Counted from the first letter of the stretch, positions 31,071-60,436 are shown. The stretch: DNA of 64,000 nucleotides from Selaginella moellendorffii (GCF_000143415.4 NW_003314287.1:1257374-1321373), one strand, 5' to 3'. The notes: generated by a model not told the origin, from the letters alone. A program made the numbers and translations.

Positions 31071-31139
31071 GGTCTCCGGGTGTACAAAATTACGGCCATA
31101 GTAGCATTGATCTGAAAAGAATGATAGCAGCAAATTCAC

Positions 31140-31682: not shown

Positions 31683-31823
31683 CTTTATAACAAACACAAG
31701 TATAACTTATGCAAAACATTAGTATGTTGTTGTTAAAGGATGTAAAATTCCACTTTTAGTGAGTTTGCTTGTTGGTACAATTCAAGGGATTGCATCTCTA
31801 GAACTTGCAACAAGAGTAAAAAT

Positions 31824-31871
<48 letters not shown>

Positions 31872-31882
31872 AGAAAGTATAT
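31683..31882 (-). pseudogene. Cys-rich peptide family pseudogene 1
   Basis: MIFTLVASSRDAIP*IVPTSKLTKSGILHPL matches the precursor; an (AT)n tract interrupts the signal-peptide codons; conserved upstream TTGTTT.TTTCACTTAATTCATT. Confidence 0.8.
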
Positions 31883-33269
31883 TTTTTCCTATAATGAATT
31901 AAGTGAAATAAACAAGTTGAAATGTATTGTAAAAATTATAATTTTTTTATATTGCTAAATACGACATTTGTGCAAACTAAGCGTTATTTGAGTTGGTGGA
32001 ATATATGTCATTCTAGGCTCCCTGAAATTTATAGTATTGTATTTAACTTTTCCCTTAAACCTTATGTTGTTTGGCATTGTCATTATTAATTATTATAGCC
32101 TAGAGCAATTTTCTAAAAGATTAACATCTTTTCTCTAAAACACAAGCACAACAACTAATGAGATATAAATGCAGGCCATAGGTAGTTCTTCCACAGACGT
32201 CAAATGTAAAACCTCCAATTATAGCAGTAGCATATGCACACAACTACACTTGATTATGCATTGATTGCATCCCAAAAACATAATTCTAGATAGTCTTGTG
32301 AAGTGATAATGCAATTAACAACCTTTTCTACATAATATTTCAAATATATTTAGTAAGAAAATGTACGATTCAAAATGTGATATGCATTAAAAGATTGCAA
32401 GATTTATTGCATGCTCAAGGCCATAAAAATGCATGCATGAAATGGTATGCAAATCATTTTGGAATAGCAAGGATGAATCAACTCCCTAAATTCAATGTAA
32501 GGAAAGAGCATAATAAACCAGAAGAACAACCAAGAAAATAAAAGGCAAAAAAGCCTTTACCATGATATTTTCATGTTTAAATAAATCACCTTTACCACTT
32601 GTCTTTGAAGAAAACCACCAAATATATATTGCTTGGGCGAATTGTGGTGTAAAGGTGAATTGTGGATTCAATTCATGATTCATTTTAACTAGGTGAGCTA
32701 GGATCAATAGTTTCCTCAACTTGCTTTTCATTTGATTGTGATAGGAGAAGAACATGTCAATTCTAACACACTAACATTGCCACTCATTCACATCCAAACA
32801 AAAAAAGACAGAAAGAACTCATCCCAAGATCAACCCAAGCCCTAAAAATACCCACCACTAATAAGTATCCTCAATTGACCAAGATTGAAACAAATAAAAA
32901 TGAGGTAAAAACAAGGAGGAAATAAGTTTATAAGTAATTGTGATTGCTTTGCACTTACCAATTCCAACAGCAGCTCAATTAAGATGTCCTCTTGTATCAT
33001 TCTAATTGCAATTGCCTTAGTTTGTCACAAGTTCAGTGAAGATGTAAATGCTGTAGGCATTTGGAGAGACACTTAAATTCTTTCTATAAATCTAAAATTC
33101 TCAAATTCAATTAATTGTACTAAGAATTACATTTTAGATCTTAGACACTTATAAGTGTTTTGAGTCACAAAAACTAGTTGCAACAATACTAGATCTCAAT
33201 TTTGCCTTGGTGGGTTATCTATTAGGATTAGAAATACATATATAAAGTTGAATTTAATTTCGAATATAC

Positions 33270-35600: not shown

Positions 35601-35749
35601 TCTATAGATATCCTTTGCTTGGAGCTAAATTATCAAATAAATGTTAATAATTTAGTTGTGGATTATTAAATAACATAATCATGCTTTAGTTTCTAAGGAA
35701 GGTAGACAAAAATATAAGTAATGTAGTTATACTTTATTTCTTTTAAGAT

Positions 35750-35979
35750 TAAATAAAAAATAGCACAATATAGATTATAATCACATATTATGGATGTTGG
35801 TTATTATGGATCAGGATAATAATATGTAAGACATGAGCAAGATGTGATGAAAGGATGTGAAATTTCATCTTTAAAGAGCTTTCTTGTTGGTACAATTTCT
35901 AGGTTTGGACATCTAGAACTTGTAATTAGAGTAACAGTCATTCAAAAAAAAAATATATTATACTATTAGAAAATATCAT
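35750..35979 (-). pseudogene. Cys-rich peptide family pseudogene 2
   Basis: MIFSNSII..(frameshift)..TLITSSRCPNLEIVPTRKLFKDEISHPFITSCSCLTYYYPDP** followed by ICDYN. Confidence 0.8.
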
Positions 35980-36295
35980 TATTAGTGGAATGAATTAAGT
36001 GAAACAAAAATTGAACTATAGAGATTATAAGATTTTCACATTGCTAAATACTGGTCACAAAAGCTCATTTTTTTTAATATAAATTAATAGAAAATTTAAA
36101 GTAGTTGATAATTTTACAAATTTGGTAGCTTTAGCATTTCAATAAAATTTTAACACTTAGGGGGTTAAATAGGGTATGTAGAAGGCTATGGAACATTTAT
36201 ATATGCCAATGTATGCTTGTTTGGTTTTTGATACCATTACTAAAAAATAGACAAAACAAATAGGGATAATGATCTAGCTCTCACAATTACATAGG

Positions 36296-38062
36296 TGTAA
36301 GCGACTAAATTTTTCATTCTACTTTAGTCACTTAACCACACCTCCGACCACTTGGAGGAGTCTCACTCACAACCTCCATAAGTTCTATTCCGGGCTTGGG
36401 CGTGCCAACCTTTGCACTTGGCCCAAGTGCTCCACGTGTTCAATCCCATGACCAACACCCCAAAGTACCATCAACATATTAGCCTGTTACGCTAAGGCCA
36501 TGCCCCTTCACCTTGGTCACACCGGTGGTCTAACACCACTTGTATCACAGTCCCATCTCTCAAAGACTGGGCCATCCATCCATGAGTGATCATCCCTGAT
36601 CCACTCCTTAGCATCCTTAGGATGCCCACAGACATGGGGATTAACTTTCCCCAATATCCCTTTTCCAATCCCCACCAAATCCCTTTTTGTCCATGGCCAT
36701 GTTCACCAACACTGCCACTAGATTAAGGCCTACAAGCCTGACCATTAAGTCCCTTAGTCCTCTGGGACTACCTCCTCACATGACCGTATCCTTGGTCTCT
36801 ACACTAAAGGATGGCTCCTCCTCCTTTTCACAGTCTGGGACTTTGGGGCAACATTTTGGAACACCGCAGCTTTACGTGAGCCTCATGGGTACTCTCCCCG
36901 CCTTCTGCCTTTGGGTGCTCTAGCCATGGGCTTAGAGCAAGGTTCCGTTGAGCCACGCCAGGTATCCAAGTAGGTAGTGCCACCCACACTTGGACTGGGA
37001 GCATCGGCCAATCGATCTCTTGGGGGAACTAAAGCCAGCTCTTGAACACTTCACCAAGCTACCTTGCTTGTCAATCCATGTTCACTCTAGTCTTGGACTT
37101 CCCAGTGGGCAGCTCATCACTCAACACTGGGTACAGCCTTCCTAGGCTAAACTGGCCTTTCCTGGCCAAACTGACTCCACTGCAATCCTCCCCCTTACTA
37201 TACTTTTGGAGCTTACCAAACCCCCTAGGGTCTGGGAGACAAACGCTTTGGGCTTTCACCCTCTCAGACTTGAACTCGGACTCGGACTCGAACTCAGACT
37301 CAGACTCAGTCTCGGGCTCGGGCTCGGTCTCGGGCTCGGGCTCGGGCTCGGTCTCGACCTCGGCCTCGGTCTTGGTCTCGGTCCTAATCTCGGTCTCAGT
37401 CCCGGTCTCGGTCCCGGTCTCGGTCTCGACCTCGGACTCCATCTCGGGTCCTTCTTGGACTCCATCTCAGACTCCGTCTCGGATTCCATTTCGGACTCCG
37501 TCTTGGATTCCATCTCAGACTCCGTTTTGGTCCATCTCAGACTCCATCTCGGACTCCATCTCGGTCCATCTCAGACTCCATCTCGGACTCCATCTCAGAC
37601 TCCATCTCGGACTCCATCTCAGACTCCATCTCGGGTCCATCTCGGGTCCATCTCGGACTCCATCTTGGACTCCAACTCGGGTCCATCTCGGACTCCAACT
37701 CGGGTCCATCTCGGACTCTAACTCGGGTCCATCTTAGACTCCAACTCGGGTCCATCTCGGAGTCCATCTCGGACTCCAACTCGGGTCCATCTCGGACTCC
37801 ATCTCGGGTCCATCTCGAACTCCAACTCGGGTCCATCTCGGACTCCTCCATGTGTCATGTGTTGGTCCTTTTGGGTCCCTTTTTGGAGCCTCGCTTATTG
37901 CTCACTTCATGCTTATTCTTTGAGCACTTTGTTGGGAGTTCCACTCTCGCTCTCCACCTTTCAAGTCGGAGCTTTCAATCCAAACGTGTTACATTCGTTT
38001 GGCTTTCGCTTCGGCCACTACCACATGGCACCCTTTCGGCTCCACTTTTTTTGTGTCTCACA
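36296..38062 (-). mobile_element. Solo LTR (family A-related), 1767 bp, with 5-bp TSD ATAGG
   Basis: TG at 36296 ... CA at 38062; ATAGG at 36291-36295 and 38063-38067; minus-strand end ...GAAAAATTTAGTCGCTTACA resembles the LTR end at 2517; internal hexamer tandem repeat 37270-37850. Confidence 0.9.
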
Positions 38063-38068: not shown

Positions 38069-40270
38069 TGATAGCATGGGAAAGAAATCCATGGAAACTT
38101 GAAAGGTAAATGTTGGATTTTGAGTAAGGCTTTTTTTTCCTGTACTCACATTCTCGCTCCTGCTTACAAAACAGTGACAAAAAAATAGAGACAAGAATGT
38201 AGTAGAAGAAGAGAAGAAGATAGAAGAGAATAAAATATAACTCAACCTCAAACCCCATAAGTAAGGATAAGTATATATCACTCTCTCCACTTTGCATTAA
38301 CAGTCATAAGCGAGAGAAAAAATGGTTAATTCAATGTAAATGCATACAATAGTGAGTGAGTTGTTTTTCAACACATTTAAGTTCTACTTATATACTACAT
38401 AATTTTATAACCATTCTTAATTGCTTCTCGCCTATGTCAGGTCTTTTCTTTTTGGATGCTTAAACTTAAGTATAAATACATTTTGCCTAAGTTTGCTTAT
38501 TTTGCTCTACTTGGGAAAATATAGAAAATAAAACATTTACCTCTTTATCACTCCCCCATAACAAAGTTACTATTTGTCCTCAGGCAGTCAAATTCTCCAA
38601 ATCCTACTCCAGGTTGCTAAACTTGGTCTTCATAGTGATAAGCTCGATGCTTCAGACTACTAACTTGCTTGGTTGATTTGCAGTCTTGTGAGGGAGGGTG
38701 CTGCTAACCTTGACTTTGTAGTGCTGTTGTGGTGTTTGTTGTTGTTGTGGCTGCCTCATCTTGCTAGATTGATCAGTCAAGAGTGTATCATTGTTGGATG
38801 CCTCTCCGATTCAACTAGAACCTCTTCTGTAGCTTGTCAATCCAGATTTGGGATTGATTTAATGTTTATTAGCCCAATTATCAGCAAGTGTATTTTTGCC
38901 TATGGGTATTCAATCTTTATTGTGAACTGTTAAAGTTCCTACAATAGCTTCTTTGCCTAAGATTGCATAAAATTGTAACAATTGTTTAGTAGGTAAAATT
39001 TTATAAATCCTTTGTAAGTTATAATACTTAAAATTTGCATTTAGCTTGGATAGGCAAATTATATTTTTGTCTAGAAAGAATCCTAGCACTATTTTCTTTT
39101 TGTATAGGTAACTTCATAGATATAAGTCTTACTTACACTATACACCTACAAAATAATCTACATGTATTATCACACCTTCTTTGACATTAGTAAAGGTACT
39201 AAAAGTCAGACTTCTATATACCTTGAGCAGAATATTATCAAGTATTTTGCTTGGTAATTTGTCAAGCTATTTAAGCAATTTCGTTAAATTTATCATTCGC
39301 TGACTTAGTTAGGCACACAAGATAATTTAATTTTTGCCTTTTTATACTTTTGCCTAGTCACATAGAGTGAAGATCAACCAACTTTCATCTAGGTTTATAA
39401 GAAAAATGTATCTTTTAATAAATGTAATGGATCATTGGCAAACATTCTTATTTTGTCTACCCTAATTCCCCTATTCAACTTTTATCAAGACAATGGATGG
39501 TCATCAATTTTCAATCTCTCCACCTAGATGTGTAAGGGTCTTTTCCTTTCTACCCATGCCTAATGTGGTTAATATTAATTCAATGCAAAGACTTTAATGC
39601 ATGATAGTCAATTCCAGAGTAGCTTATTTGCTTCATAGTGGGTCTTACCCTCTAGCTTATAGTCAACTTTGCTCTTATAACTGTGAAATTAGAAAGAATG
39701 ACCTATTGCTCTTAGCAAATTTTAAGCAAATTAGATCAACACTAGGGACTAATTTGAATGGGGTATAAAGATTAATCCATGAAATTGCTTTGTAGAATCA
39801 ACACAAGAGTCAAATTGTTTAATGCATGATAGCCTATTCTAGATCAATTTCTTTGTGTAATGACATTAGATAGCTTTTTAAATATATGATAGCTAATTTG
39901 CAGAAGACTTTGCTTCAAATCTAAATAAAAATTACTTTTCAAAGTAGCTTTTTCATTAATGGGTGGTTATGGTTAATACAAGTCTTTGCTCAAGCTTGTA
40001 TGAAATTTTTTTGAGCTTTAATTAATTTACCTAAGTGTACTAAGTGTAAATTGGTTTGAACAGTTAGAATAATTTGTGATAACCATTTCAAAATTTTGAC
40101 TTATGAGTCTCATAAGCTTTTACAATATGCATAGGAGATTTAAACTTGAGACAAAACTACTCTTAAATTATGTCTAAGTAGTAGTCCAAGCTAAAAGACC
40201 TTAGATCAAAGCCTTAAGACAACACAATGTTTTAATTGTGATTCTACCTTTGTCAAAGCTTTGTAATATT
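38069..40270 (-). mobile_element. Old Ty3/gypsy element (family B): 3' LTR 38069-38550, PPT 38551-38557, decayed RT-RNaseH/integrase
   Basis: Minus strand GGGGGAG followed by TGATAAAGAGGTAAATG; the LTR is the reverse complement homolog of 49153-49553; faint pol-like motifs in 38940-40270. Confidence 0.65.
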
Positions 40271-43150: not shown

Positions 43151-44319
43151 TTATATTGCACCTCCTTGGCAAAAATGTAAATGGAAAAAATATAAACTTT
43201 CATGATTGTCTTTTCTTAAGGAACAAAGAGAAAGGTAGAAAAGTACTTGCAAAAGTTTAGGATGATAAACACTACCACTCACTATTACCCTTATTCAAAT
43301 GTTGATAAAATTAAAGTTAGATATGTTTCTTGAGCTTAAAACCATTAATGTTCATTTACAATTCTACACTAAAAGATTATAGTGAAAAAAAAACACTTTC
43401 ATTTACAAATATTAACCCTATATTTAATACTTTGTCAATATCTTTGATGGTAATTAAATTAAATTTTTATTAAAGCTTGATATACATTTCCACCAGGGTG
43501 TTGCCCAAAGTTAAAATAAAAGTAAGTACTTGCTCCTTGAAAATTCAATTTCTCAAAATTATAAGAATTGTTTACTTTCTATTGAGCTTTTCACTCAAGT
43601 AAGAATGATAGGAATCAAATATTGAAGCTTTTATAACAGCATCAATAACTTGCTTTGGCTTAGGAGAGATGGTGAATTAAGAGTGTATAAATCGACAAGA
43701 ATACTTGTCATGAACATCTATAATTCATCTTGATACACTTAAACAAGATTTTCAAATTTACAAAAAACTTATCAATTTCTCTATACCAAGTATGAGTGGA
43801 TGTACTTTTTATAGACAATCTAATTTCCTAGATAAGTTTTATACTTAGTCATATAAAAAACTTTGTGAATAAGGTTGCTCAAAAGGTATGTGCAAATTTA
43901 ATTCTTGCCTTCCAAATTCTCGTAGGATTTATTAATGCACTATTAACTTGTGTAATGATGAGAGCTAGATTGTTGTCCTTGATTGGTTTAAAAGTTTTGT
44001 TATAATGCCAAGGCATAGCATCAAAAACAAAATGGGCATCCATAATAATTTTGCACTTGGCATATAAATTGTCGCGCATGTGACTTCGGGTATCGAAAGT
44101 TACCTGTCGACCAGTCCTTACGGACACTCTTACCTTACTGCCACGATGGCAGAAGGTCGGTATTGCTGGACCCTTTATCAGCCCCTCTTGTTCAAGTGTT
44201 AGTAAACTGGACTTTGCATCTGTACTTGGCCAGATGAGCATAAGGACGGAATTCCTAAGTGTCTATTCAGCCAAGCATACTTGGCCTGGCTTTTTAGGTC
44301 TCTTTTGCTCTGTCTTGCA

Positions 44320-44419
44320 NNNNNNNNNNNNNNNNNNNNNNNNNNNNNNNNNNNNNNNNNNNNNNNNNNNNNNNNNNNNNNNNNNNNNNNNNNNNNNNNN
44401 NNNNNNNNNNNNNNNNNNN
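44320..44419. other. Assembly gap (100 N)
   Basis: Run of N. Confidence 1.
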
Positions 44420-44730
44420 ACTTGGGTCTAAGCCCAAGTTCCATTCCATGCTAGCTGGTGGAGTACCCATATCCTCACGTTAGGCCACCAGTATGCCGAA
44501 ATAGCGCCAGACTCTGTTTGGCTCCGTTTTGCATGCTGGTCCTGGCATTGGGATGCTGGTTGCTTCAAGACTATTCCAAGTCGCTCCGGGCTCCTGTCCT
44601 TTCGCTCCTTGGGCTATATGCTCGGGAGTTGCTCCATGGTCCGGTTCCATCACTCCTTGGTGTCACGCTTGGGAGTTTGGCACTGTTCCTTCGTTCAGTG
44701 GCCCAAGGCCCTAAACCTCGGGTTCCTATA

Positions 44731-44860
44731 GACACGTGGCACGGACACGTGGTATGTGACACATGGCATCTGTCACGTGGCACAAAGAGGGTTTAGGTTC
44801 CGCTTCGTGGTGTTATCCTATGGTAAATCACCATAGGATAAAGGGTCAAAACCACGTGCG
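44731..44860 (+). promoter_or_regulatory. LTR-borne cluster of four CACGTG G-box/ABRE motifs plus a perfect 12-bp hairpin (44813-44841); repeated in every unit
   Basis: GACACGTGGC, GACACGTGG, TCACGTGGC, CCACGTG; TTATCCTATGGT-AAATC-ACCATAGGATAA. Confidence 0.6.
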
Positions 44861-45124
44861 CTACATAAATCCAAAAGTACCTTGAGTATGTATTTTTATT
44901 TTCTTCTACAGAATATTACTCTTGTGTTTTGTACACTCATAACCTTCCAAGTGTTAAATTTATATTCAAAGGCATAAAGTTACAAAATTCATAATGTAAA
45001 ACTATTTGTAGATTTCTACAAGAAATAGTGAGTTTTTGTAGCTAATATTTAGCAATGTGAAAATTTTATAATCTTTATAATATAATTCAGCTTGTTTGTT
45101 TCACTTAACTCATTTTAGGAAGAA

Positions 45125-45349
45125 ATGGTGTTTTCTAAAAATATGATATGTGTTTTTTTGATGATTTTTACTTTAGTTACAAGTTTTAGAGATGCAAACT
45201 TAGGAATTGTACCAGCAAGTAAGCTCTCTAAAGGTGGAATTTTACATCCTTTAGCAGCATCTTGCTCATGTTCTACATATTATTGTGTCAATCCATACAT
45301 AATATGTGATTGTAATCCAGGTTGTAGTTGTTTATGTTACTCTTCATAA
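45125..45349 (+). CDS. Small secreted 8-Cys peptide precursor (74 aa), array copy 1
   Basis: Hydrophobic signal peptide, ~22-aa pro-region, C-terminal SCSCSTYYCVNPYIICDCNPGCSCLCYSS; Cys spacing conserved in the diverged paralog at 60215. Confidence 0.85.
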   Translation: MVFSKNMICVFLMIFTLVTSFRDANLGIVPASKLSKGGILHPLAASCSCSTYYCVNPYIICDCNPGCSCLCYSS

Positions 45350-46337
45350 AAATAAAGCATGATTATGTTACTTCCTTACAAAAATAAAGTATGATTATAA
45401 ATCTATGACTAAATTATTTACAATTCTTAAATTACAAGATATGGTTTTCTATACATAGTCATATAAAGTTTTTGAAAATATGCTTTAGAGGAATTTGAGT
45501 TCATTTAAAAATCTAATAAAGAGGTAAATGTTTTCAAATGTATAGTAGGGATAGTGGGTAGGTTGGGCATGGCCGACCAACCTGAGGCATAGTCTAGCTC
45601 CCGCTTGCGTGCCTGTCCTTGTTCTGCGTCCAGCTTGGGTCTAAGCCCAAGTTCCATTCCATGCTAGCTGGTGGAGTACCCATATCCTCACGTTAGGCCA
45701 CCAGTATGCCGAAATAGCGCCAGACTCTGTTTGGCTCCGTTTTGCATGCTGGTCCTGGCATTGGGATGCTGGTTGCTTCAAGACTATTCCAAGTCGCTCC
45801 GGGCTCCTGTCCTTTCGCTCCTTGGGCTATATGCTCGGGAGTTGCTCCATGGTCCGGTTCCATCACTCCTTGGTGTCACGCTTGGGAGTTTGGCACTGTT
45901 CCTTCGTTCAGTGGCCCAAGGCCCTAAACCTCGGGTTCCTATAGACACGTGGCACGGACACGTGGTATGTGACACATGGCATCTGTCACGTGGCACAAAG
46001 AGGGTTTAGGTTCCGCTTCGTGGTGTTATCCTATGGTAAATCACCATAGGATAAAGGGTCAAAACCACGTGCGCTACATAAATCCAAAAGTACCTTGAGT
46101 ATGTATTTTTATTTTCTTCTACAGAATATTACTCTTGTGTTTTGTACACTCATAACCTTCCAAGTGTTAAATTTATATTCAAAGGCATAAAGTTACAAAA
46201 TTCATAATGTAAAACTATTTGTAGATTTCTACAAGAAATAGTGAGTTTTTGTAGCTAATATTTAGCAATGTGAAAATTTTATAATCTTTATAATATAATT
46301 CAGCTTGTTTGTTTCACTTAACTCATTTTAGGAAGAA

Positions 46338-46562
46338 ATGGTGTTTTCTAAAAATATGATATGTGTTTTTTTGATGATTTTTACTTTAGTTACAAGTTTT
46401 AGAGATGCAAACTTAGGAATTGTACCAGCAAGTAAGCTCTCTAAAGGTGGAATTTTACATCCTTTAGCAGCATCTTGCTCATGTTCTACATATTATTGTG
46501 TCAATCCATACATAATATGTGATTGTAATCCAGGTTGTAGTTGTTTATGTTACTCTTCATAA
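46338..46562 (+). CDS. Small secreted 8-Cys peptide precursor, array copy 2
   Basis: Identical protein to copy 1. Confidence 0.82.
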   Translation: MVFSKNMICVFLMIFTLVTSFRDANLGIVPASKLSKGGILHPLAASCSCSTYYCVNPYIICDCNPGCSCLCYSS

Positions 46563-47550
46563 AAATAAAGCATGATTATGTTACTTCCTTACAAAAATAA
46601 AGTATGATTATAAATCTATGACTAAATTATTTACAATTCTTAAATTACAAGATATGGTTTTCTATACATAGTCATATAAAGTTTTTGAAAATATGCTTTA
46701 GAGGAATTTGAGTTCATTTAAAAATCTAATAAAGAGGTAAATGTTTTCAAATGTATAGTAGGGATAGTGGGTAGGTTGGGCATGGCCGACCAACTTGAGG
46801 CATAGTCTAGCTCCCGCTTGCGTGCCTGTCCTTGTTCTGCGTCCAGCTTGGGTCTAAGCCCAAGTTCCATTCCATGCTAGCTGGTGGAGTACCCATATCC
46901 TCACGTTAGGCCACCAGTATGCCGAAATAGCGCCAGACTCTGTTTGGCTCCGTTTTGCATGCTGGTCCTGGCATTGGGATGCTGGTTGCTTCAAGACTAT
47001 TCCAAGTCGCTCCGGGCTCCTGTCCTTTCGCTCCTTGGGCTATATGCTCGGGAGTTGCTCCATGGTCCGGTTCCATCACTCCTTGGTGTCACGCTTGGGA
47101 GTTTGGCACTGTTCCTTCGTTCAGTGGCCCAAGGCCCTGAACCTCGGGTTCCTATAGACACGTGGCACGGACACGTGGTATGTGACACATGGCATCTGTC
47201 ACGTGGCACAAAGAGGGTTTAGGTTCCGCTTCGTGGTGTTATCCTATGGTAAATCACCATAGGATAAAGGGTCAAAACCACGTGCGCTACATAAATCCAA
47301 AAGTACCTTGAGTATGTATTTTTATTTTCTTCTACAGAATATTACTCTTGTGTTTTGTACACTCATAACCTTCCAAGTGTTAAATTTATATTCAAAGGCA
47401 TAAAGTTACAAAATTCATAATGTAAAACTATTTGTAGATTTCTACAAGAAATAGTGAGTTTTTGTAGCTAATATTTAGCAATGTGAAAATTTTATAATCT
47501 TTATAATATAATTCAGCTTGTTTGTTTCACTTAACTCATTTTAGGAAGAA

Positions 47551-47775
47551 ATGGTGTTTTCTAAAAATATGATATGTGTTTTTTTGATGATTTTTACTTT
47601 AGTTACAAGTTTTAGAGATGCAAACTTAGGAATTGTACCAGCAAGTAAGCTCTCTAAAGGTGGAATTTTACATCCTTTAGCAGCATCTTGCTCATGTTCT
47701 ACATATTATTGTGTCAATCCATACATAATATGTGATTGTAATCCAGGTTGTAGTTGTTTATGTTACTCTTCATAA
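47551..47775 (+). CDS. Small secreted 8-Cys peptide precursor, array copy 3
   Basis: Identical protein to copy 1. Confidence 0.82.
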   Translation: MVFSKNMICVFLMIFTLVTSFRDANLGIVPASKLSKGGILHPLAASCSCSTYYCVNPYIICDCNPGCSCLCYSS

Positions 47776-48763
47776 AAATAAAGCATGATTATGTTACTTC
47801 CTTACAAAAATAAAGTATGATTATAAATCTATGACTAAATTATTTACAATTCTTAAATTACAAGATATGGTTTTCTATACATAGTCATATAAAGTTTTTG
47901 AAAATATGCTTTAGAGGAATTTGAGTTCATTTAAAAATCTAATAAAGAGGTAAATGTTTTCAAATGTATAGTAGGGATAGTGGGTAGGTTGGGCATGGCC
48001 GACCAACTTGAGGCATAGTCTAGCTCCCGCTTGCGTGCCTGTCCTTGTTCTGCGTCCAGCTTGGGTCTAAGCCCAAGTTCCATTCCATGCTAGCTGGTGG
48101 AGTACCCATATCCTCACGTTAGGCCACCGGTATGCCAAAATAGCGCCAGACTCTGTTTGGCTCCGTTTTGCATGCTGGTCCTGGCATTGGGATGCTGGTT
48201 GCTTCAGGACTATTCCAAGTCGCTCCGGGCTCCTGTCCTTTCGCTCCTTGGGCTATATGCTCGGGAGTTGCTCCATGGTCCGGTTCCATCACTCCTTGGT
48301 GTCACGCTTGGGAGTTTGGCACTGTTCCTTCGTTCAGTGGCCCAAGGCCCTAAACCTCGGGTTCCTATAGACACGTGGCACGGACACGTGGTATGTGACA
48401 CATGGCATCTGTCACGTGGCACAAAGAGGGTTTAGGTTCCGCTTCGTGGTGTTATCCTATGGTAAATCACCATAGGATAAAGGGTCAAAACCACGTGCGC
48501 TACATAAATCCAAAAGTACCTTGAGTATGTATTTTTATTTTCTTCTACAGAATATTACTCTTGTGTTTTGTACACTCATAACCTTCCAAGTGTTAAATTT
48601 ATATTCAAAGGCATAAAGTTACAAAATTCATAATGTAAAACTATTTGTAGATTTCTACAAGAAATAGTGAGTTTTTGTAGCTAATATTTAGCAATGTGAA
48701 AATTTTATAATCTTTATAATATAATTCAGCTTGTTTGTTTCACTTAACTCATTTTAGGAAGAA

Positions 48764-48988
48764 ATGGTGTTTTCTAAAAATATGATATGTGTTTTTTTGA
48801 TGATTTTTACTTTAGTTACAAGTTTTAGAGATGCAAACTTAGGAATTGTACCAGCAAGTAAGCTCTCTAAAGGTGGAATTTTACATCCTTTAGCAGCATC
48901 TTGCTCATGTTCTACATATTATTGTGTCAATCCATACATAATATGTGATTGTAATCCAGGTTGTAGTTGTTTATGTTACTCTTCATAA
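48764..48988 (+). CDS. Small secreted 8-Cys peptide precursor, array copy 4
   Basis: Identical protein to copy 1. Confidence 0.82.
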   Translation: MVFSKNMICVFLMIFTLVTSFRDANLGIVPASKLSKGGILHPLAASCSCSTYYCVNPYIICDCNPGCSCLCYSS

Positions 48989-49152
48989 AAATAAAGCATG
49001 ATTATGTTACTTCCTTACAAAAATAAAGTATGATTATAAATCTATGACTAAATTATTTACAATTCTTAAATTACAAGATATGGTTTTCTATACATAGTTA
49101 TATAAATTTTTTGAAAATATGCTTTAGAGGAATTTGAGTTCATTTAAAAATC

Positions 49153-51120
49153 TAATAAAGTGGTAAATGTTTTATCATGTATATTTTCCCAGGCAGAGCA
49201 AAAGAAGGAACTTAGACGAAATAGAGTTACGCTTAAATTTAGGCATCCAAAGAAGAAAGACTAAACCTAAGCAAAAAATAGTTAGAAATGGTTATAAAAT
49301 AATGTAGTATATAAGTAACACTTAAACGTACTGAAAAACAACTCCCACTCACTATTGTATACATATGCATTGAATTAACTATCTTTGGGGTTTGATACTG
49401 AGTTATATTCTATTCTTTTTTATTTTCTTCTCTTCTTCTTCTATGTTTTTGTCTTTGTTTGTTTGTCACTGTTTTGCAGGCAGGAGTGAGAACGTGAGTA
49501 CAAGTAGAAAAAGCCTTACCTACTTTTGGCAACTATGGTAGGATAAACTGTCATTCTTTGGTTTAAAAAATAATTGGGAGAAAATTGTTTATGAATTCCA
49601 AATATGCACAACACTAAGAATAATAAATAGATCTTTTCAGTGATTGTAAAGGCCCTAAGCCTAAACAACACTAAACAAAGGAACTCTTCTTGCAATTAAA
49701 ATGGTTTAATGCCCAAACAACGTAGGAAAGATAGTTTCTCAACTGTCACTAAAGCCATAGAGTATGGGATGAGTTTGAAATTGAAGTTCGGCATACATTG
49801 CCAAAAAACTCAAATTTAAATTGTTTTGTTAATAATTTCTTGAAAAAAATCTAAAAGAATAAGGAATAGAGTTTGTTTGATGTGGAAAACATAATCAACT
49901 ACTCTAGAATTCTTTCTTTCTGAGCAAGTTTTTATTTGGATTTTTAAAGGATACATTTTTTAGCAACATGTCACAATTTTTCTAGGCATATAGAAGTAGA
50001 AAAATTGAGCACCTGTAACTCTTGTCTTCGACTCCAACTTGAGGAAGAGTTTGGGCCTAAAGCTATACCACCATAGTAAAATATTGAGATTGAGATTAAA
50101 TTTATAAATTAAATAAGGAGAAAAGAAAGAAGTAGGGTAGCTAAACCAACTAAATCTAAACAATTAAGTTTTGAGAATGATAAAATTTTGAAACTACCTT
50201 CGATTGCACAAATTTCAATGTTGAAGCTTTAAAATCACCCAACTTCAAAGGTTTACAAGACTATTAGGTTCTAGAAGATTGAGTTTATGATATGGAAAAT
50301 TATTATAACAGATATTGATGATCATATAAAAGTTGCATATACATAATTTTTTCTCATCAATCATGCTAAGACTTACTGGTGTTAGGTGTGATATAAAAGC
50401 TATACACACCGTAATAACTAAATATTTAGCTAAGTTGTTAGGATTGAGAGTTAAGAAAATATACCTACATATTTTTAGTTTATTGAAAATAGACAAGTTG
50501 CAAAGAAATTTGTAAATAATGTACCAATAAAAATAATCAAATAGAAAGACTTAGTAATGTTGAAGATACTAAATTTTTAGATGATGTTTGGTATCTTCAA
50601 GAAATATATCCAGGGATACATAATGTTAGATAGAGTTGCATTATATTAAAGTCAAATTTCTAATTGCAAAAGTGCTTCTTGAAGGATTGAGATACTAGAT
50701 TTCTATCTATAAGAGTATCTCAAAGAACATCTAAGAATAAATGTTGAACCTTTTGGGTTTAAGTGATGGAAGAGAAAGTGATAGTGATTAAGTTAAAATA
50801 GGTAATAGTGTTGATTTAGTATCAAGGGAAATCATTGAATTATTAAGGAATTATATTATCTTCTCAACAAATTACTATTAAAGTAAACTTAATGTAAAAT
50901 TTACCATCATACCTCACCTCTTAATTGTGAGGTTGATCATCAAATTGAGATTTCTTTGGGTTCTAAGCCGCCAATAAAGGTTCTATATCATTTGAACATC
51001 AAGAAAAAATTTGAACTTAAGAACCAACTCATAAAAATTCTTGACAAATATCATAGTAAGTCACCTTATAGGGATGGTACTATAAGGATATATATTGATT
51101 ACAAGCTCTTAGACTAAAAG
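49153..51120 (+). mobile_element. Old Ty3/gypsy element (family B): 5' LTR ~49153-49553 and decayed gag-pol up to the RT start
   Basis: LTR is homologous (inverted) to 38069-38550; 50920-51110 translates to VDHQIEISLGSKPPIK..YHL....ELKNQL..IL...SKSPY..DGTIR.YIDY (gypsy RT N-terminus). Confidence 0.7.
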
Positions 51121-51493: not shown

Positions 51494-52180
51494 TGTAGTG
51501 CACATGGTTTTCACCCATTATCCTATGGTAATTTACTATAGGATAACTATGGAGCAAAATATAACACTTAAACATGTGTGTAAAGGGCAATAGAGTGAAA
51601 TTAAGTTTTAAAGCCTTAGATTATTAAATTAAGGGAAAGAGCTAAACATTTGAGTTTATAACCAAGGAGTGAATGAATTTGAGCATAAAGTAACTTTCAA
51701 GCATATAGCCAAAAACGAAGAAGTAAGAGCATGAAATGATATTAAAACAATCCTAGAGTATCTAGCATCCCAATGCTAAGACCAAAATGCAAAATGGAGC
51801 CAAATGAAATTTGACATTATTTCAGTATACCAATGGCTTAACATAAGAATATAGATACTTCATTAGGTAGTATGGCATAAATTTTAGGGTTAAATCTAAA
51901 CCAAATGTAAAAAAAGACAAATATGTTGAATTTAAACTTCTAGGAGGTCATCCAATCCAATATTATTTAAATTAAGGACACTTAACCCAAATATCCCAAA
52001 ACCCTTAACTAATTAAAAAAAAAGCACTTTTATTCATAAGCTCTTTCCTTTTATATTTAAACCCTTATGGACCATTATTCCCTTATACATAACATATGGT
52101 TACTTACACATACAGTTAAACTATATTTTAAATTGGACCTTCCCACTATCCCTACTATATATTTGGAACCCCATAGATGC
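51494..52180 (-). mobile_element. Degenerate inverted copy of the family-A LTR 3' part found in the tandem array
   Basis: TGTAGTGCACATGGTTTT.ACCC.TTATCCTATGG... is the reverse complement of the array LTR end; CCCACTATCCCTACTATA matches the array TATA-like segment. Confidence 0.75.
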
Positions 52181-53194
52181 CTTTATATGAAAGCATGCTT
52201 TTGGCTTTCATCCTAGTCTTAAGAATTAGTCTTTAGAGTAATCATAAAAATTTACTTAATATAAAATGGTGTTAGATTGTGAATTTGGACATAAGAATAA
52301 CACTATCATGTTCAAAACAATATCTATATTCTATAGATATGCTTAACTAGTAATTTAGACACTTTTCCATAAATAGCTTATAGGAATTAACACATGTAGC
52401 ATGATTGTAAGAGTGTATTGGTGGACATGGTAAGCTATTATATAATGAATATTAACTCAACATTAGTAAGTGCAAGTAGTCTTTTATCCTGGACCAAGTA
52501 TGCTCAACAAGAAACATATACAAATGCTTACTTTATACTTATTTAGCATAAATATATATATGATAATCAATTTCTCAACTAATTTGGGTGGAAACTAATA
52601 AAGGGAACAGATAGTACCAATCCAAAAAGGCTCATTAATAGATAAATTTTGATATCTACAATCATATTTAAAATACCTCTACTCAAAAGAACCAAATCAA
52701 TAGAAACACATTGGAATATAATTGTCTTGTAAAAGTGACCACAAGGGGATTGTAGAATGAATAATTCAAAAGCCTTTCCTGGCTGGCAAGAAAGGTAATT
52801 AGAGCTATGCATAAATCTGATCCTCCTCTAAGGAAACAAAATAAGAACAGCAAAATAATATCATCATTTCTCACTGTTGGCTATGTCAAGAAAGTGGGAA
52901 GGAAACTCTCACCAGTGGGAGAATATCTTTGGGATCTTTTAGAAATGGCTGCACTAGAATCACTCTCTAATGTACATTCTTAATGTGCAAAAACCCATGG
53001 AATCGTTTGCCTTTCACACATGCAAAGCCACTATGGAGGAAAAATATTTACACAGAATTACATTAGAGATGGCTTCATTTTATTGGCTCCACCTCTACTT
53101 TTAATGTTACCTTCCCCACTGACTATGACTGGAGAATCAGTTTTATGCTCAGCTAAGCAAACTTAGAGTTAGGCTATGAGATGACGAGTAGATA

Positions 53195-53720
53195 TTCTTC
53201 TATAATCGTTTCTTTCTGCCAGTCTCTGCTGATATGGCCCAACTACTCCCAAAAGAACGAAGAAAACCATCAGCAAGGCTTGGTGATCAAACACAACGCA
53301 AACTAACAATACGCTACAAACTCCGTCACTGCATTTCTCTTCAAAGAAGTTGCTCGACTTGCAAATATACAAACTCAGGTAACCTTGAGCTTCGTAGAGC
53401 CATTTTTTTCAGTCATTGTTTTGCTACTGCGCAATGTCATGGGGTGTGGCTTAACAGTTAGTCCCATACTAGCGTCAGGACGGTAGATTGTGGACTGCCT
53501 CAGCTTTCAATGCACAAATATGGTATGTACCACTCATTTTCGCTTCTCATCGTTGGCTTTTACTAGCATTCGCAAAATGTGTGGAACACAAGATATCGAC
53601 ACCAATGGTCTATAAAATGCCCATTAATCAACAGCTTTCCACGGATACAGAGTCCCCGGGTGTACAAAATTTCGGCCATAGTAGCAGTGACGAAAAGAAT
53701 GATAGCAGCAAATTCACAGC
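53195..53720 (+). pseudogene. Aspartyl aminopeptidase 3' duplicate (pseudogene), including its 3' UTR
   Basis: Colinear with ~30510-31145 (GTCTCTGCTGATATGGCC...ACGCTACAAACTCCGTCACTGC...GAACACAAGATATCGACAC...GATAGCAGCAAATTCACAGCC) with deletions. Confidence 0.88.
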
Positions 53721-53724
53721 CATT

Positions 53725-56700
53725 TTACGTGAAGATGGTGATCACGTCTCTCCTGTAGCCACGGACCATTAGCAGCCTGGGAATGCCATCGACGAGGAGG
53801 TCCATGTACTCCATGTAGCAATATGAGGGATGCTTGGGAGGTGGCGGTGGCAAGCTGACCAGCACCACGGCCGCCATTCTCGAGTATCTCATGATGATTG
53901 AGTTGAGCTTGAGGCTGGTGTAGAGGAACTTGTTAACTTGCTGCTCGTTGTAAGAGTGCTGGACCTCGTCCTCGATCGACGCAGCTTTCTTCTTGAGCTC
54001 GGCAGACCTGTGAGCAATCCTCTTCCTGGCCTTGGAGAAGGCCTCCATTGCGTCCTCCCGTCCAGTATCCACGCCACGGTCCTCCTGGTGAGCCTCCCAC
54101 GACTTCATCGTCACCACAATCACCTCGGCTTGCATGCGCAGGTCATACAAGAACTTCTTCACGTCGGCCTTGAGCTCCTCCGCCTCGGTGTCCTCCTCCG
54201 AGATGCAAAAGACTTGAATCTTACAGCTCTCGAAGCTGTCCTTTGCTCGGAGGAGCTGGGAGAGGAGCAGCATGAGGCCACCGTCGCGGACGATCCAGTA
54301 GAGGTCGATGGTTCCATACTGCTTCTGGTATTCGCCCGGCCACTCGTCCAGCCCCTTGACGATCACCACGGCCTTGTTTGCGATGGAGCAGTCGTTGATA
54401 ATGCTTACGAAAACATCGGAGACGCGGCCATGTTGTTCGTCCCTCCAGATCTCAGGATATCTCATGCAGACGATGTTTGGCTTGAGGTTGCCAAGTCCCA
54501 TAGTCTGTACAATACCCCGGAACCCCTCGCAGACATCCTTCGCAATGATCACCTCGGCCACCCCTTCGCAGTTTTTGTAGTCGATGTAAGTTCCAAGTAA
54601 TCGACACGCCTGACGTGCCTCGTCTACCTTATCTATATACTCTCCCTCCGAAATGGAAACGAATATGGACATACCGCGGCCCTTCTTCTTCATGCAGTTG
54701 GCAAAGTCGGCGAGTTTGGGATGGCATGGAACGTCTTGTGGCAAAATCCCCCAAGGCTTGCAAAATATAAGTGGAATGGGATACCAGTTTTTCGGGTGGA
54801 CGTTGTTTGCTGCAGAAGTAACAATAATTTAAAGAGTTTGAAGATAGGAAAAAGCTTACCTCCTAAGGAACGAAGACTTCTTAAAGCAAGCTGAAAGTAA
54901 GCACTTTTAAAACCATCACCCCAGTCTCCTGCTTTGCCTTTCAAGCTAACGTAATAATATATGAGACTTGCCAACGCGAGTGATACAGTTGTGAAAATCC
55001 AGGATATTAAAAACATTATAACTGTAATCCAGATAAACACTGTTACAGGTAACTTCAGTAATTGGTAAAAGTATGTACCTATGCACAATAGAGCACCCAG
55101 GAGCGAAAAGCTCCAGTGATGAAATTTCCACCGAGGACGCCAGCTTGGAGCATCAAGTAAGTCGAGCAAAAGACAGGAAAGATTAACTCCCGCATAGCAC
55201 AAGAGAAAGAACATGGTAATAACGGGAGAGATGAGGTCGAGATCACCAATGATGACGCAGCTTGAACATATGAACATGGTGAAAAGAGTTGCCAAATGAG
55301 GCTCGACCCCGTCTGGTGCCTTGAAATATTTCAAAACTGGGAGTATGTCGTCATTTGCAATAGCAGCTAGCAGCCTTGGCGCACCGGTTAAACTTTGAAG
55401 AGCTGCGCCAAGTGTCGAAAGGATAATGCCAACTTGAACGACTGCGGGAACAGGCCAAGCTAATGTCGCGGTCAGCAATCTAGATAACCAAAAAAAAAAA
55501 AAAGAATTTGTTACAAACATACAAATAGAGTTTTCTCAATGCATACCGATTTGTTAAGAGTTCTTCACGGTTTGCCACAGAGCCAAACATGATAGCTGAA
55601 ATTAAATAAAGACATGTCGTGGAGGCAATGGCTAGCAAAGTTCCCACCGGTATAGAACGCTGTGTATCTCTCAGAGATGCAGAGCGATTGGAGCCAGCCA
55701 TAATACCAGTAACTGCCGGGAAGAAAAGCCCCAGCAGGTCCCTGAAAAACAAAGAAGTCACGCAAAAGATAACGGCGTCCGACAAACAGAAATTAAAAGC
55801 ATGCGATATAGAATTTGACGAAATAGAAAGAAAACGATTCATGCATTCCCTAGCAAACCAGATGAAAAACGCAACGACACATACTCAAAATTCCAGTATA
55901 TGATACCATCTGGCGCAGGAATTCCAGCTCTGTTGGTACGCTGGTACTCGGGACCCCAGTTAGCATGGAGTGTTCTCCATCTGAGGCCCGTCACTCCCGC
56001 TGGACATCACAGATATTAGAACGGCTCAATAAACATTTGATTGCTTACATGGATCACCACGTCGAGGAGCAGCAAAGATACCAATAAAGATGAGGAAAAC
56101 GGATAATAAAACTGGAATAAGAAAAGCCGGGGCCACTCTGTTGATGATCTTCACACCTCCAAAGACGATAAGACATAAGATAATTGTCACAATTACTCCA
56201 TACACTTGAAGGTCATGCAAACTGGGACTTTTTAATATCTCAGGACTCGAGCCTGCTGGAGCTGGTGCTAGTTGTGTCACGCTTTCTGCACATGAAAAAT
56301 CAAGCAAATTAAAAACACGCAAAAGAATAGAAAGGGAACTCTTGAGATTTACTAGCCTTGAAATATGCCGGCCCCAGGAAGAGCATCCAGAAAAGTTTCT
56401 ACTGCACCTAAAATATACCTAAGAAGTGTCCAGTTATGATCGAACAATCAAGGACAGGGGAACACTTACAGTGATCCAGCAACCGCATTTCCAAGGAAAA
56501 AGCAAAGCCCAATACTAATACCGACTTCCGGACCAAGAGCTCGACCAATCAGATAATACGGTCCGCCACCCTATAAACCAGTGCTTAACCAAAAGAAAAA
56601 CTGTCGCAACGCAAAATTTTGAACCTTCATCGCGCCATTGGTGGCTATGGCGCTCAGCGAGATCCCAGTCAAGAATGTGCATAAGCAGCACAAAGAGACG

Positions 56701-57935: not shown

Positions 57936-59283
57936 ATGCGGTCTTCGCAGGGTAAAAGAGTGGCTCCTTTCATCTTGCTCGCCGCGATTTGCCTGGTTTT
58001 CCATGGAGTGGATCGCCCATCGTCCCGGTTGCGATCAACGAGACTGGCCTTCTTCGTCCACAATCAGCAAAGGAATCCTCGCGCACACAAGCTTGCGGTA
58101 TGCGCTGTTTCAGAAAAAAAAACATTGGTGGAATTCTCGTGTTCTTTCAGGATCCCCGGGTCGCAATTTGTCTTGTAGGCGGAGCCAGAGCCTTCGAGAT
58201 CACTGGACCAAGCATAGTGGACCAAATCCTCCACGTCTACGGAAACAATTCGGATGTGTTCCTCCACGCGCCGCTGGACGAGAACACTTACAAGCTCTTC
58301 CTGCTGGGCAGGGGCGCTAGATCGAACAGAAATTCTTCGTCCTCGCGGTTGGCAGCAGCGCGGATCTTCGATCAAACACCCATACCCGAGCTTGATTTTC
58401 GCAAGCAAGTCCTCACATCCGATGGGATTCAAGTAAGCTCTCTTTGCATCGATCTAGGTACTCTGTTTTTAGCTTTGGCCACCTTCTTTCCAAACTTGAC
58501 ATCTCGCAGGGATTACTGCAATATTTCAATCTCGTCGAGGGCTGCTGGGATCTCATCACGAAACACGAACGTCGTCATGGTTTCCAGTACGATTGGATCG
58601 TAAGAACAAGGCTAGATGGCTACTGGAGTGCCCCTATGCCGCCCATCTCCACCTTCGATGGCGCCCACTACACTATCCCATACGGCTCCCAATTCGGCGG
58701 CCTCAACGACAGGTTAGGCATCGGCACTCGCAACTCCAGCCGCATCGCTCTCCACCGCCTCCAATGCCTCGATCGCCTCCACGCAAACGGATTCCAGCGC
58801 CTAAATTCCGAGAGAGCATTCAAGGCGCAGCTCCAAATCACGCACACCAGCGTCCAGCTCAAGAAATTCCCCTTTTGCGTGGTGAGCGCGAAGAAGTACG
58901 ATTGGCCGCCCAGGGAATGGGGCGTGCCTGTGATGACCATGGCGAGCAAAGGACCTCTAAATGGAGCGAAGTGTCGTCCATGCCGGGCGAAGATCAGAGG
59001 AGAGGAAGCTCACGCCATCGCCGAGGCACTAAACAGGGGGTGGAGCTGGAGTGGACCTAACGAAGGGGTGGAGCTTTGCGATGCCACGGGGGACTGGGAT
59101 GCTGACTGGGAGGCTGTCTATGACAACGTGGTTGGTCAGTGCAGTCAATTGGAGAGGTTGCGGGTGTCTCGCCTGGGGACGCTAGACGAGTGTGTGGAGA
59201 GATTGACCGAGTTTGAGAGAATGTGGGGTGAATGGGATGCTCCTTCTCCTGTTAGTATTTGCGAAAGGAAGTTTATAATTTGA
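57936..59283 (+). CDS. Conserved plant protein of unknown function with N-terminal membrane anchor (DUF7796-like; possibly glycosyltransferase-like), 3 exons
   Basis: RVAICLVGGARAFE.TGPSI, FLHAPLD, GIQGLLQYFNLVEGC, YDWIVRTRLDGYW, PYGSQFGGLNDRLGIG, SKGPLNGAKCRPC; GT-AG introns at ~58098-58150 and ~58432-58509. Domain name is from recall. Confidence 0.8.
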
Positions 59284-59376: not shown

Positions 59377-59574
59377 TTAGGATTTCGTTACAAGTAACAA
59401 AAACAAGCAAATGGCATCATCACAATTGCATATAAGACATGGAACAAGACAATAATATGGAGGGCATGTAGCCACTGTTATTAAAGGATGTAAAACTCCA
59501 TCCTTACAAAGCTTGCTTGCTAGAAAAATATTCAAGTTTCCATCTCTAGAATTTGTAACAAGAGTAAAAATCAT
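59377..59574 (-). pseudogene. Cys-rich peptide family pseudogene 3
   Basis: MIFTLVTNSRDGNLNIFLASKLCKDGVLHPLITVATCPPYYCLVPCLICNCDDAIC then a frameshift; original start and first Cys lost. Confidence 0.75.
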
Positions 59575-60214: not shown

Positions 60215-60436
60215 ATGGTGTTTTCTACTCACATTATCTGTTTTTTCTTGATGATTTTTACTGTTGTTGCAAGTTCTAGAGATGCAACCCCAAATATTAT
60301 TCCAGCACACAAGCTCCTTGAGGGTGAAGTTTTATATCCTTCAAGAGTGCGTTGCCACTGCTTTTCATATTATTGTCCTGATCCATATAGTGTTTGCAAT
60401 TGTGATGGGATTTGTGCTTGCTTTTGTGAATTTTAA
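60215..60436 (+). CDS. Small secreted 8-Cys peptide precursor (73 aa), diverged intact paralog
   Basis: MVFSTHIICFFLMIFTVVASSRDA...YPSRVRCHCFSYYCPDPYSVCNCDGICACFCEF; TATAAAA at ~60168, same 5' leader as array copies, downstream AATAAA. Confidence 0.85.
   Translation: MVFSTHIICFFLMIFTVVASSRDATPNIIPAHKLLEGEVLYPSRVRCHCFSYYCPDPYSVCNCDGICACFCEF

Follow-up and report, generated by a model that had tools for sequence, protein, structure and literature searches.

Introduction

Plant genes for cysteine-rich peptides, including the defensin-like and NCR families, form classic clustered arrays generated by tandem duplication and unequal crossing-over. Microhomology-mediated template switching (FoSTeS/MMBIR) or end joining gives rise to tandem duplications with novel junctions and few shared bases. 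Promoters and enhancers derived from LTRs are exemplified by Ruby in blood orange and by the heat response conferred by ONSEN in Arabidopsis. At the GAP1 locus of yeast, the homologous solo LTRs that flank the gene recombine, or template switching (ODIRA) produces inverted triplications (PMC11790251). The genome of Selaginella moellendorffii was assembled from Sanger reads and carries 6,693 tandem gene duplications, with no whole-genome duplication (PMC5750206).

Here we describe a tandem array of a small peptide gene in a 64,000-nucleotide stretch of the S. moellendorffii genome (GCF_000143415.4 NW_003314287.1:1257374-1321373; hereafter the window). Coordinates are counted from the first nucleotide of the window, and features are on the plus strand unless the minus strand is given.

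Results

A 1,213-bp unit is repeated head-to-tail from an N gap to approximately position 49176, in the form of three full units and one unit cut by the gap, with 99.4-100% identity among them. The tandem unit of this length that the initial annotation of the window had proposed was recovered by both BLAST and a self-comparison at a shift of 1,213. BLAST delimited the full units at 45538-46750, 46751-47963 (99.8%) and 47964-49173 (99.4%), and the partial first unit at 44421-45537, which matches unit positions 97-1213 (45634-46750) at 100% identity. In the shifted self-comparison the matches extend from 44420/44421, the first bases past the N run (44320-44419), to ∼47979+1213; the first base after the gap is a mismatch in the unit comparison. 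Within each unit, the 3'-terminal 541-544 bp of a solo LTR precede 259 bp of native upstream sequence and an intact 74-aa ORF, which is followed by its 3' flank and by 23 bp from another repeat (repeat B). The period is constant at 1,213 bp and the novel B|LTR junctions are identical (45534|45535, 46747|46748, and 47960|47961), which is the pattern of a tandemly arrayed gene. The period-1213 array is confirmed in the assembly; the number of copies is uncertain, four being the count in the assembly, and the N gap adjoining the array in this Sanger assembly could hide more units. An Rfam search of the unit at E<=1 returned no RNA gene or other hidden feature. A recombinant LTR-internal-LTR array of a retrotransposon was rejected: the units are without the first 250 nt, at least, of the LTR, and no PBS was found past the LTR end.

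The solo LTR starts at 44070 with TGTCGCGCATGTG, directly after the 5-mer TAAAT (44065-44069). Its 5' part (44070-44319) is unique in the window and lies outside the repeated unit. The N run at 44320-44419, an assembly gap, falls within the LTR and covers the LTR-side parent of the junction as well as unit positions 1-95 of the first copy. The 3' part (44420-44865), recognized by BLAST identity, belongs to the first (partial) unit and ends in ...GCGCTACA. We placed the LTR end at 44865 because of the TG...CA ends and the TSD, the same TAAAT being found again at 44866-44870. The 5' end TGTCGCGCATGTG and the reverse complement of the 3' end, TGTAGCGCACGTG, agree at 11/13 positions. The LTR has the same orientation as the peptide gene, whose ATG (45125) is 259 bp downstream, in good agreement with the earlier description of an LTR with these termini and this TSD ∼260 bp upstream of the ATG. 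A degenerate paralog of the peptide gene at 35716-36298 (minus strand), found by homology, supplies the empty site in its upstream region: its homology to the array (36298-35716) crosses the LTR insertion point with an alignment score of 491. A second member of the family, an old and C>T-decayed full solo LTR of 1,182 bp, is located at 51494-52675 (minus strand) with the TSD AGAGG on both sides, and both of its halves align to the array LTR. The 5' LTR part aligns to 52667-52489 of this relative (score 69 vs a shuffle maximum of 42), and the LTR fragment of unit 1 aligns to 51925-51494 (score 349, shuffle maximum 37.5). Termini with an inverted repeat, a TSD with an empty site, and a second family copy with its own TSD all characterize the element as a solo LTR. 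Judging from the TSD, the terminal inverted repeat, the empty site and a relative with the two halves in the same order, both sides of the gap are parts of one genuine insertion, 44070-44865. In the region of the N run the old relative has 329 nt vs 38 nominal nt in the array LTR; if the gap has its nominal length, position 44319 is equivalent to 45532 in the unit, which is 2-3 nt short of the switch point. The gap falls in non-coding LTR DNA and therefore no reading frame is affected.

The motif TATAGTAGGGATAGTG occurs at 45541, 46754, 47967, and 1809 on the plus strand, and at 52159-52144 on the minus strand, compared with a chance expectation of ∼0.01 matches. The occurrence near 1810 had been pointed out in the initial annotation; the minus-strand match is additional. 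In the old relative the motif is 517 nt from the LTR start, i.e., it is internal to this LTR family. The repeated fragment had been described as the TATA-to-end half of the LTR; it is indeed a partial LTR, but as judged from the 1,182-bp relative with its motif at 517 nt it amounts to approximately the 3' half to two-thirds. A different reading, prompted by the position of the motif just past a G run (1771-1790), in which every unit carries a whole LTR starting at the motif, was rejected because the relative (52675-51494) has the motif 517 nt inside and because position 44070 has the TSD, the inverted repeat and the empty site. The fragment (the 3' 544 nt of the LTR) is located by sequence alignment at 45535-46078 in unit 1, where it begins CAAATGTATAGTAGGG..., and by unit alignment at 46748-47291 in unit 2 and at 47961-48504 in unit 3, the last with three private transitions (48129, 48137, and 48207). 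It holds a block of 27 nt whose sequence is conserved across three LTR lineages and a 14-bp tandem repeat (x3.8) with three ACGTGG (G-box/ABRE-like) cores, of which the old family member has one unit only.

The opposite end of the unit is formed by the first 23 nt of repeat B (45512-45534 in the first copy). The complete repeat B, the 3' parent of the junction, is found at 49152-49520 as an old AT-rich, LTR-like sequence with 80-84% identity to a second copy at 38548-38124 (minus strand); this second copy begins TGATAAAGAGG, the TG coming straight after the purine run GGGGGAG. The unit had been thought to stop ∼25 bp inside an older LTR. It ends 23 bp into repeat B, close to that estimate, whereas the assignment of repeat B as an LTR is plausible without being proven; no TSD was found for it. 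Repeat B gave no significant alignment to any of the four LTR copies, and the reading that the two are distant relatives and that homeologous recombination took place first was rejected on this basis. The proposal of a duplication between two unrelated repeats is supported by these results, both unit ends being located in repeats without detectable mutual homology.

The junction reads GTTTT|CAAATGTATAG (switch point GTTTT|CAAATG), and the terminal flank reads GTTTT-ATC-ATGTATA, with ATT at that place in the other B copy. Related LTRs carry CAA(A/T)(G/A)TATAG. The 3 nt just 5' of ATGTATA are CAA in 3/3 junctions and ATC in the terminal flank, and because of this difference we placed the switch upstream of ATGTATA, with no clean microhomology at the junction. 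The earlier suggestion of ATGTATA as junctional microhomology is right in that the string is present at both places (45538-45544 and 49177-49183), but the real switch is 3 nt upstream of it. The 3' parent could be read for this comparison (49152-49190), and the LTR parent is inside the N run; since the LTR-side parent sits there, the junction type is not classifiable and the term microhomology-mediated is not established.

The last unit has an outer edge (49099-49176) that has not been homogenized, with 3 differences in 78 bp followed by ATC in place of CAA. This is 3.8% divergence vs 0.35% elsewhere (4 in 1,132; Fisher p=0.007), a contrast that rests on 3 sites. Private changes are concentrated in one unit (6/8; p ∼0.02 vs a star-like pattern), with p=0.41 when the edge sites are left out. 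The amplification had been called very recent, which suits the homogenized body but not the outer 78 bp. Because these last 78 bp are ten times more diverged, the data point not to one burst but to a two-phase history, in which the first duplication would be older and unequal crossing-over or conversion would have acted recently. The later expansion assumed in the initial annotation is supported.

The ORF was called at 45125-45349, 46338-46562, 47551-47775, and 48764-48988, and the copies are identical (4/4). The 74-aa product has a signal peptide, a propeptide and a mature part with 8 Cys, and is predicted to be secreted. An intact paralog at 60215-60433 encodes a product in which all 8 Cys are conserved. 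The peptide matched 0 Pfam families at E<=10, and a word search of protein sets gave no match. A profile search of 1.84 billion representatives returned just two long Cys-repeat proteins, which were matched in 8-9 short stretches and taken as spurious, and an atlas search returned generic toxin-like precursors only (0.82). The peptide thus appears to be an orphan, with no relatives detected in public protein sets.

The native upstream region (44871-45124) is repeated in each unit and includes a conserved proximal promoter of ∼170 bp per unit, which is shared with paralogs that are without this LTR, together with TATAAT strings that precede the ATG by 44-58 nt. The native promoter has been neither lost nor replaced, as the conserved block and TATAAT at -44 to -58 are present in every unit, and AATAAA signals follow the stop in each. 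In comparison, an RNA starting at the motif would carry a leader of ∼800 nt with 14 uATGs, 11 of them within the LTR. The idea of promoter capture is not borne out by these features. With a native proximal promoter, an ORF and poly(A) signals of its own, each unit is predicted to form a self-contained gene. The LTR piece was most likely carried along as a passenger, because the breakpoint happened to fall there; a role of this piece in driving the gene is unsupported.

Discussion

We consider the locus an ordinary young tandem gene duplication that amplified a small secreted peptide gene, with the LTR piece probably carried along as a passenger (probability of ∼0.6). A solo LTR inserted 259 bp upstream of a gene for a small secreted 8-cysteine peptide, after which a 1,213-bp segment, from inside the LTR to 23 bp into the downstream repeat B, was duplicated head-to-tail, creating the novel B|LTR junction. 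Because the two repeats have no detectable homology, this first duplication was presumably non-homologous, involving at most a few bases of microhomology in a replication template switch or in end joining. Unequal crossing-over or gene conversion would then have enlarged the array and homogenized it except for the outermost 78 bp of the last unit, which stayed diverged. The effect, if any, would be a raised dosage of an orphan secreted peptide.

Other explanations differ in what they make of the same features. Two units, or some other number, may be real, with the four-gene layout assembled from near-identical Sanger reads, possibly of mixed haplotypes: the array begins exactly at the N run, 1,117 bp of the partial unit at its start match the following unit at 100% identity, a mismatch falls on the base right after the gap, and the Sanger reads (PMC5750206) are shorter than the 1,213-bp unit. 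A single-copy locus, however, cannot produce the junction, which was assembled three times and, together with three distinct unit haplotypes over unit positions 45-389, indicates at least two units per haplotype. We regard such inflation as unlikely; copy number, and even copy order, could be assembly products in an array that touches a gap and has its first two copies 100% identical. The very high unit identity and the constant junction would also be expected if a 1.2-kb segment had been excised as an eccDNA circle, or copied by a rolling circle, and re-inserted as a multimer in a single burst, and yeast GAP1 is a known case in which circles arise between LTRs on either side of the gene (PMC11790251). 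Nothing was found in favor of the rolling-circle or eccDNA route that had been put forward for this locus. The private changes weakly disfavor a star-like pattern, as of one burst, the edge is ten-fold more diverged, and the array lies in place and in register with parental flanks on both sides, as in-situ duplication predicts. In addition, LTR-LTR recombination would be unable to form a circle because the two flanking repeats are not homologous. This burst is the least probable of the explanations discussed here.

A further explanation is LTR exaptation, in which the fragment would provide a promoter or stress-responsive enhancer and the LTR and gene would have been amplified as an advantageous cassette. 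The sense orientation of the LTR 259 bp upstream of the gene fits it, and so do the 27-nt block conserved in three LTR lineages and the three ACGTGG cores in a tandem repeat of which the old member has one unit. On the other hand, the native promoter and its TATA-like strings are kept and are shared with paralogs without this LTR, a transcript started at the motif would have the long leader with 14 uATGs, the breakpoint cuts off all LTR sequence upstream of the motif, and a breakpoint in TE-derived DNA is expected for TE-rich intergenic space. We therefore consider exaptation distinctly unlikely. Its stronger form, in which the ACGTGG cluster and the 27-nt block would make the peptide gene stress/ABA-responsive and the enhancer and gene would have been amplified under dosage selection to give an adaptive copy-number variant of recent age in a lineage without whole-genome duplications, has slimmer odds again, though not as slim as those of a single burst.

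If the array is real, young tandem duplication would have left a clean, datable record of the growth of a lineage-specific secreted peptide family in a plant dependent on local duplication. It would exemplify a first duplication that was non-homologous and had its two ends in transposon debris, and a subsequent homogenization by unequal exchange. This is textbook behavior and common in Selaginella; therefore the value of the locus is mainly that of a well-resolved case and of a caution on assembly near gaps. Greater interest would attach to the locus only if the gene turned out to be controlled by the co-amplified LTR piece, or if accessions differed in copy number and, with it, in phenotype.

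Compared with FoSTeS/MMBIR events, the sequences that meet at the junction are likewise unrelated and share no more than a few bases where the switch occurred, with an ATGTATA patch nearby, but in contrast to a clean case the 7-mer is set off from the switch by three mismatched bases and one parental sequence is in the N run. The array resembles Ruby and ONSEN in having a sense LTR upstream of a gene, at a distance of a few hundred bp, and stress-type ACGTGG motifs; it differs in that the native promoter of the gene is intact and the would-be LTR leader is long and uATG-rich. As at yeast GAP1 (PMC11790251), a gene bracketed by two LTR-derived repeats has become amplified. Unlike at GAP1, the repeats show no homology, and all copies are in direct orientation and are joined non-homologously. 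With plant Cys-rich peptide clusters the locus shares a small secreted Cys-rich gene that has paralogs and pseudogenes close by. Its unit is tiny (1.2 kb) for a tandemly arrayed gene, both unit ends are in transposon remnants and the peptide family is an orphan, whereas the head-to-tail order, the constant period and junction, the near-identical inner units and the more diverged outer edge are those of tandemly arrayed genes.

Structure and copy number of the tandem array

Comparison of the sequence with itself, shifted by 1,213 nt, gave a period-1,213 match from 44420/44421 (the first bases past the N run) to ~49176. BLAST with one unit located three full units on the plus strand, at 45538-46750 (unit 1), 46751-47963 (unit 2, 99.8%) and 47964-49173 (unit 3, 99.4%), and a partial first unit (44421-45537, plus strand) that is 100% identical to the next unit over the latter's positions 97-1213. 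Tandem Repeats Finder has a period limit of 500 and therefore missed the 1,213-bp period; it detected internal 14-bp and 32-bp repeats that recur at 1,213-bp spacing. The 1,213-bp array of the initial annotation is thus borne out by self-comparison and BLAST, with small corrections. Only nine positions vary among the array copies: unit position 45 is C in unit 1 and T in units 2 and 3, unit 2 has one private site and unit 3 has six, and the ninth is the first base past the gap, probably a contig-end error. The four peptide ORFs (45125-45349, 46338-46562, 47551-47775 and 48764-48988, plus strand) encode identical 74-aa products. Four gene copies is the assembly's count. Because three distinct unit variants are present and the novel junction was assembled three times, each haplotype must carry at least two units but need not carry four.

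The array LTR and the assembly gap

The N run (44320-44419) sits in non-coding DNA, so the reading frame is not at issue. Four independent observations indicate that both of its sides belong to one LTR insertion. Copies of TAAAT at 44065-44069 and 44866-44870 form a target site duplication (TSD), which places the LTR at 44070-44865 with its end 259 bp before the peptide ATG. The two LTR ends form an imperfect inverted repeat: TGTCGCGCATGTG at the 5' end agrees with the reverse-complemented 3' end in 11 of 13 bases. Once the GC-rich block is taken out, the two flanks give one unbroken alignment (score 491) with the DNA upstream of a degenerate paralog (36298-35716, minus strand); this DNA represents the empty site. 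An LTR of the same family at 52675-51494 (minus strand), a full solo LTR of 1,182 bp with its own perfect TSD (AGAGG), aligns by its 5' part to 44078-44289 (score 69 vs. shuffle maximum 42) and by its last 430 nt to the LTR fragment of the unit (score 349 vs. shuffle maximum 37.5). This relative is heavily decayed, its differences being nearly all C>T or G>A, and is an old copy worn by deamination beside a young GC-rich one.

The motif TATAGTAGGGATAGTG, found near the start of each unit's LTR fragment, stands 517 nt inside the LTR of the full relative; what the repeated units hold is therefore the 3' part of the LTR alone, as had been proposed. The opposite reading, that the units carry a whole LTR beginning at the motif, was prompted by a polypurine-tract-like G run before the motif at 1809; it was dropped, as alignment of the 1809 lineage with the array LTR is limited to a 27-nt block and a short stretch in the centre. 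The distance from the aligned 5' part to the motif is 329 nt in the relative vs. 38 nominal nt in the array. The left contig end lies 2-3 nt before the switch-point equivalent (with a nominal 100 N), which is no more than consistent with the assembler stopping where unique sequence meets repeat. Further units could be hidden in the gap.

The 27-nt block, TTCCAAA(A/T)(G/A)TATAGTAGGGATAGTG, is nearly unchanged in three LTR lineages that are otherwise barely alignable (1800-1826, plus strand; 45535-45558 and its repeats; 52175-52144, minus strand), and in the 1.8-kb lineage it directly follows the long G run. The block probably serves some function in the LTR. The array LTR also carries a 14-bp tandem of 3.8 copies with three ACGTGG (G-box/ABRE-like) cores at 45944-45995 (and +1213 repeats), present as a single unit in the old relative, and an inverted repeat at 46026-46054, 24 nt before the LTR end, made of two perfectly matching 12-bp arms around a 5-nt loop, which the old relative has kept. 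No Rfam match to an RNA gene was found in 43500-50000. Elsewhere (2478-2530), an initiator tRNA-Met-type primer-binding site, TGGTATCAGAGC, comes after an LTR end at 2517. The last ~35 nt of this LTR appear a second time at 2917-2950, only ~400 nt of internal sequence lying between; the element is truncated or rearranged.

Repeat B and the duplication junction

Repeat B, downstream of the peptide gene, starts at 49152 with TAATAAAG. The only other copy in the window (38548-38124, minus strand; 80-84% identity) begins TGATAAAGAGG directly after GGGGGAG. B resembles an old LTR; a search for its TSD found none, and none of the window's other four LTR copies showed significant similarity to it. 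The terminal part of each unit is 23 nt of B. The three novel junctions read GTTTT-CAA-ATGTATA-GTAGGG, and in the genuine downstream flank the sequence is GTTTT-ATC-ATGTATA-TTTTCC. ATC is replaced by ATT in the other B copy, and related LTRs have CAAA(A/T)(G/A)TATAG at this place. Since CAA occurs in related LTRs and ATC or ATT in B copies, CAA is LTR-derived and the switch is GTTTT|CAAATG. ATGTATA, previously taken as the junction microhomology, lies 3' of the switch and is an identical patch close to it rather than the crossover itself; as a crossover it would need correction of three heteroduplex mismatches. Comparison with relatives suggests 0-3 shared bases at the switch, a count that cannot be read directly because the LTR-side parent sequence is inside the gap. 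A microhomology-mediated first duplication is possible but not established.

Peptide gene and family

In the peptide, a hydrophobic N-terminus is followed by a variable middle and, at the end, by CxCx4Cx6CxCx3CxCxC. An intact paralog at 60215-60436 (plus strand) keeps all eight cysteines at 51% identity, with dN/dS of 0.66 overall and 0.43 in the signal and mature parts. A degenerate copy (59377-59574, minus strand) stands head to head with it, and two more pseudogene-like copies lie at ~35760-35980 and 31708-31961 (both minus strand). The peptide matched no Pfam family. A word search did not return even its own protein, and the gene is therefore unannotated. A profile search of 1.84 billion representatives found only two long proteins (627 and 1,777 aa), aligned over 8-9 short stretches and taken as spurious Cys-repeat matches, and an atlas search gave only generic toxin-like precursors (0.82, under its reliability line). 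On these searches the 8-Cys family could not be given a name and appears to be missing from public protein sets.

Promoter content of the unit

The initial annotation proposed that the LTR supplies a captured promoter, and our results do not support this. The 170 bp before the ATG are the best conserved non-coding block between the array gene and the 36k and 31k paralogs, TATAAT strings occur 44-58 nt upstream of the start codon, and AATAAA occurs twice within 40 nt past the stop codon; each unit holds a complete gene even when the LTR piece is left aside. For an RNA started at the motif, the predicted leader is ~800 nt long and contains 14 upstream ATGs, of which 11 lie in the LTR; it would be poorly suited to translation of a 74-codon ORF. 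The breakpoint drops all LTR sequence upstream of the motif, whose reading as a TATA box is a guess. With its 27-nt block, ACGTGG tandem and inverted repeat, the LTR fragment might have an enhancer effect, but nothing supports one. The simpler reading is that, this intergenic space being full of transposon debris, the breakpoint landed in some of it.

A different LTR (36298-37215, minus strand), related to the 1.8-2.5 kb LTR, ends ~320 bp upstream of the degenerate 36k peptide paralog in the same orientation; two peptide loci thus each have an independent sense-oriented upstream LTR. Before this LTR come a long, degenerate tandem tract of short period, whose mechanical translation is rich in Ser/Asp or Glu, and the second B copy (38124-38548, minus strand).

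History of the amplification and genomic setting

Unit 3 differs from unit 1 at seven positions, three of them in the last 78 bp before the switch; divergence there is 3.8%, vs. 0.35% in the remaining 1,132 bp (Fisher p=0.007). This edge-versus-body contrast is the signature of a homogenised array with an older outer edge: exchange between units, through unequal crossing-over or gene conversion, would keep the array body uniform, and the outer edge, lacking a partner farther out, would retain the age of the first duplication. At assumed substitution rates of angiosperm type (7e-9 to 1.3e-8 per site and year), which may not be those of Selaginella, the edge dates to ~1.5-2.7 million years, the body of the last unit to 0.14-0.4 million years, and units 1 and 2 to ~0.1 million years. 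A single burst through a rolling circle or circle-derived multimer, also suggested initially, is not supported: it predicts an even spread of private changes, but six of eight fall in one unit (p ~0.02; the test loses its power once the edge sites are removed, p=0.41), and the array is in register between both parental flanks, which favours in-situ duplication. We concluded that duplication between two unrelated repeats, followed by expansion, is supported.

The window consists of AT-rich intergenic sequence broken up by GC-rich retrotransposon pieces. An ORF at 58444-59280 has 97% identity to the S. moellendorffii DUF7796 protein LOC9656132, and its next best matches are in other lycophytes and mosses (≤55%). 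On this evidence the window is nuclear DNA of a spikemoss. A 1.3-kb direct repeat (17056-18360 and 21152-22450; 86% identity, 4.1 kb apart) ends just upstream of a subtilase gene; its two copies may be the LTRs of a short non-autonomous element. A segmental duplicate with gene fragments, whose frames resemble parts of neighbouring genes (30516-31280 and 53192-53910; 72% identity), shows that this region also underwent local duplication at an older date. The Sanger-read assembly of the S. moellendorffii genome contains 37.5% transposable elements (PMC5750206) and 6,693 tandem gene duplications, without whole-genome duplication (PMC5750206). The array is a new, well-resolved case of a very common type of event.
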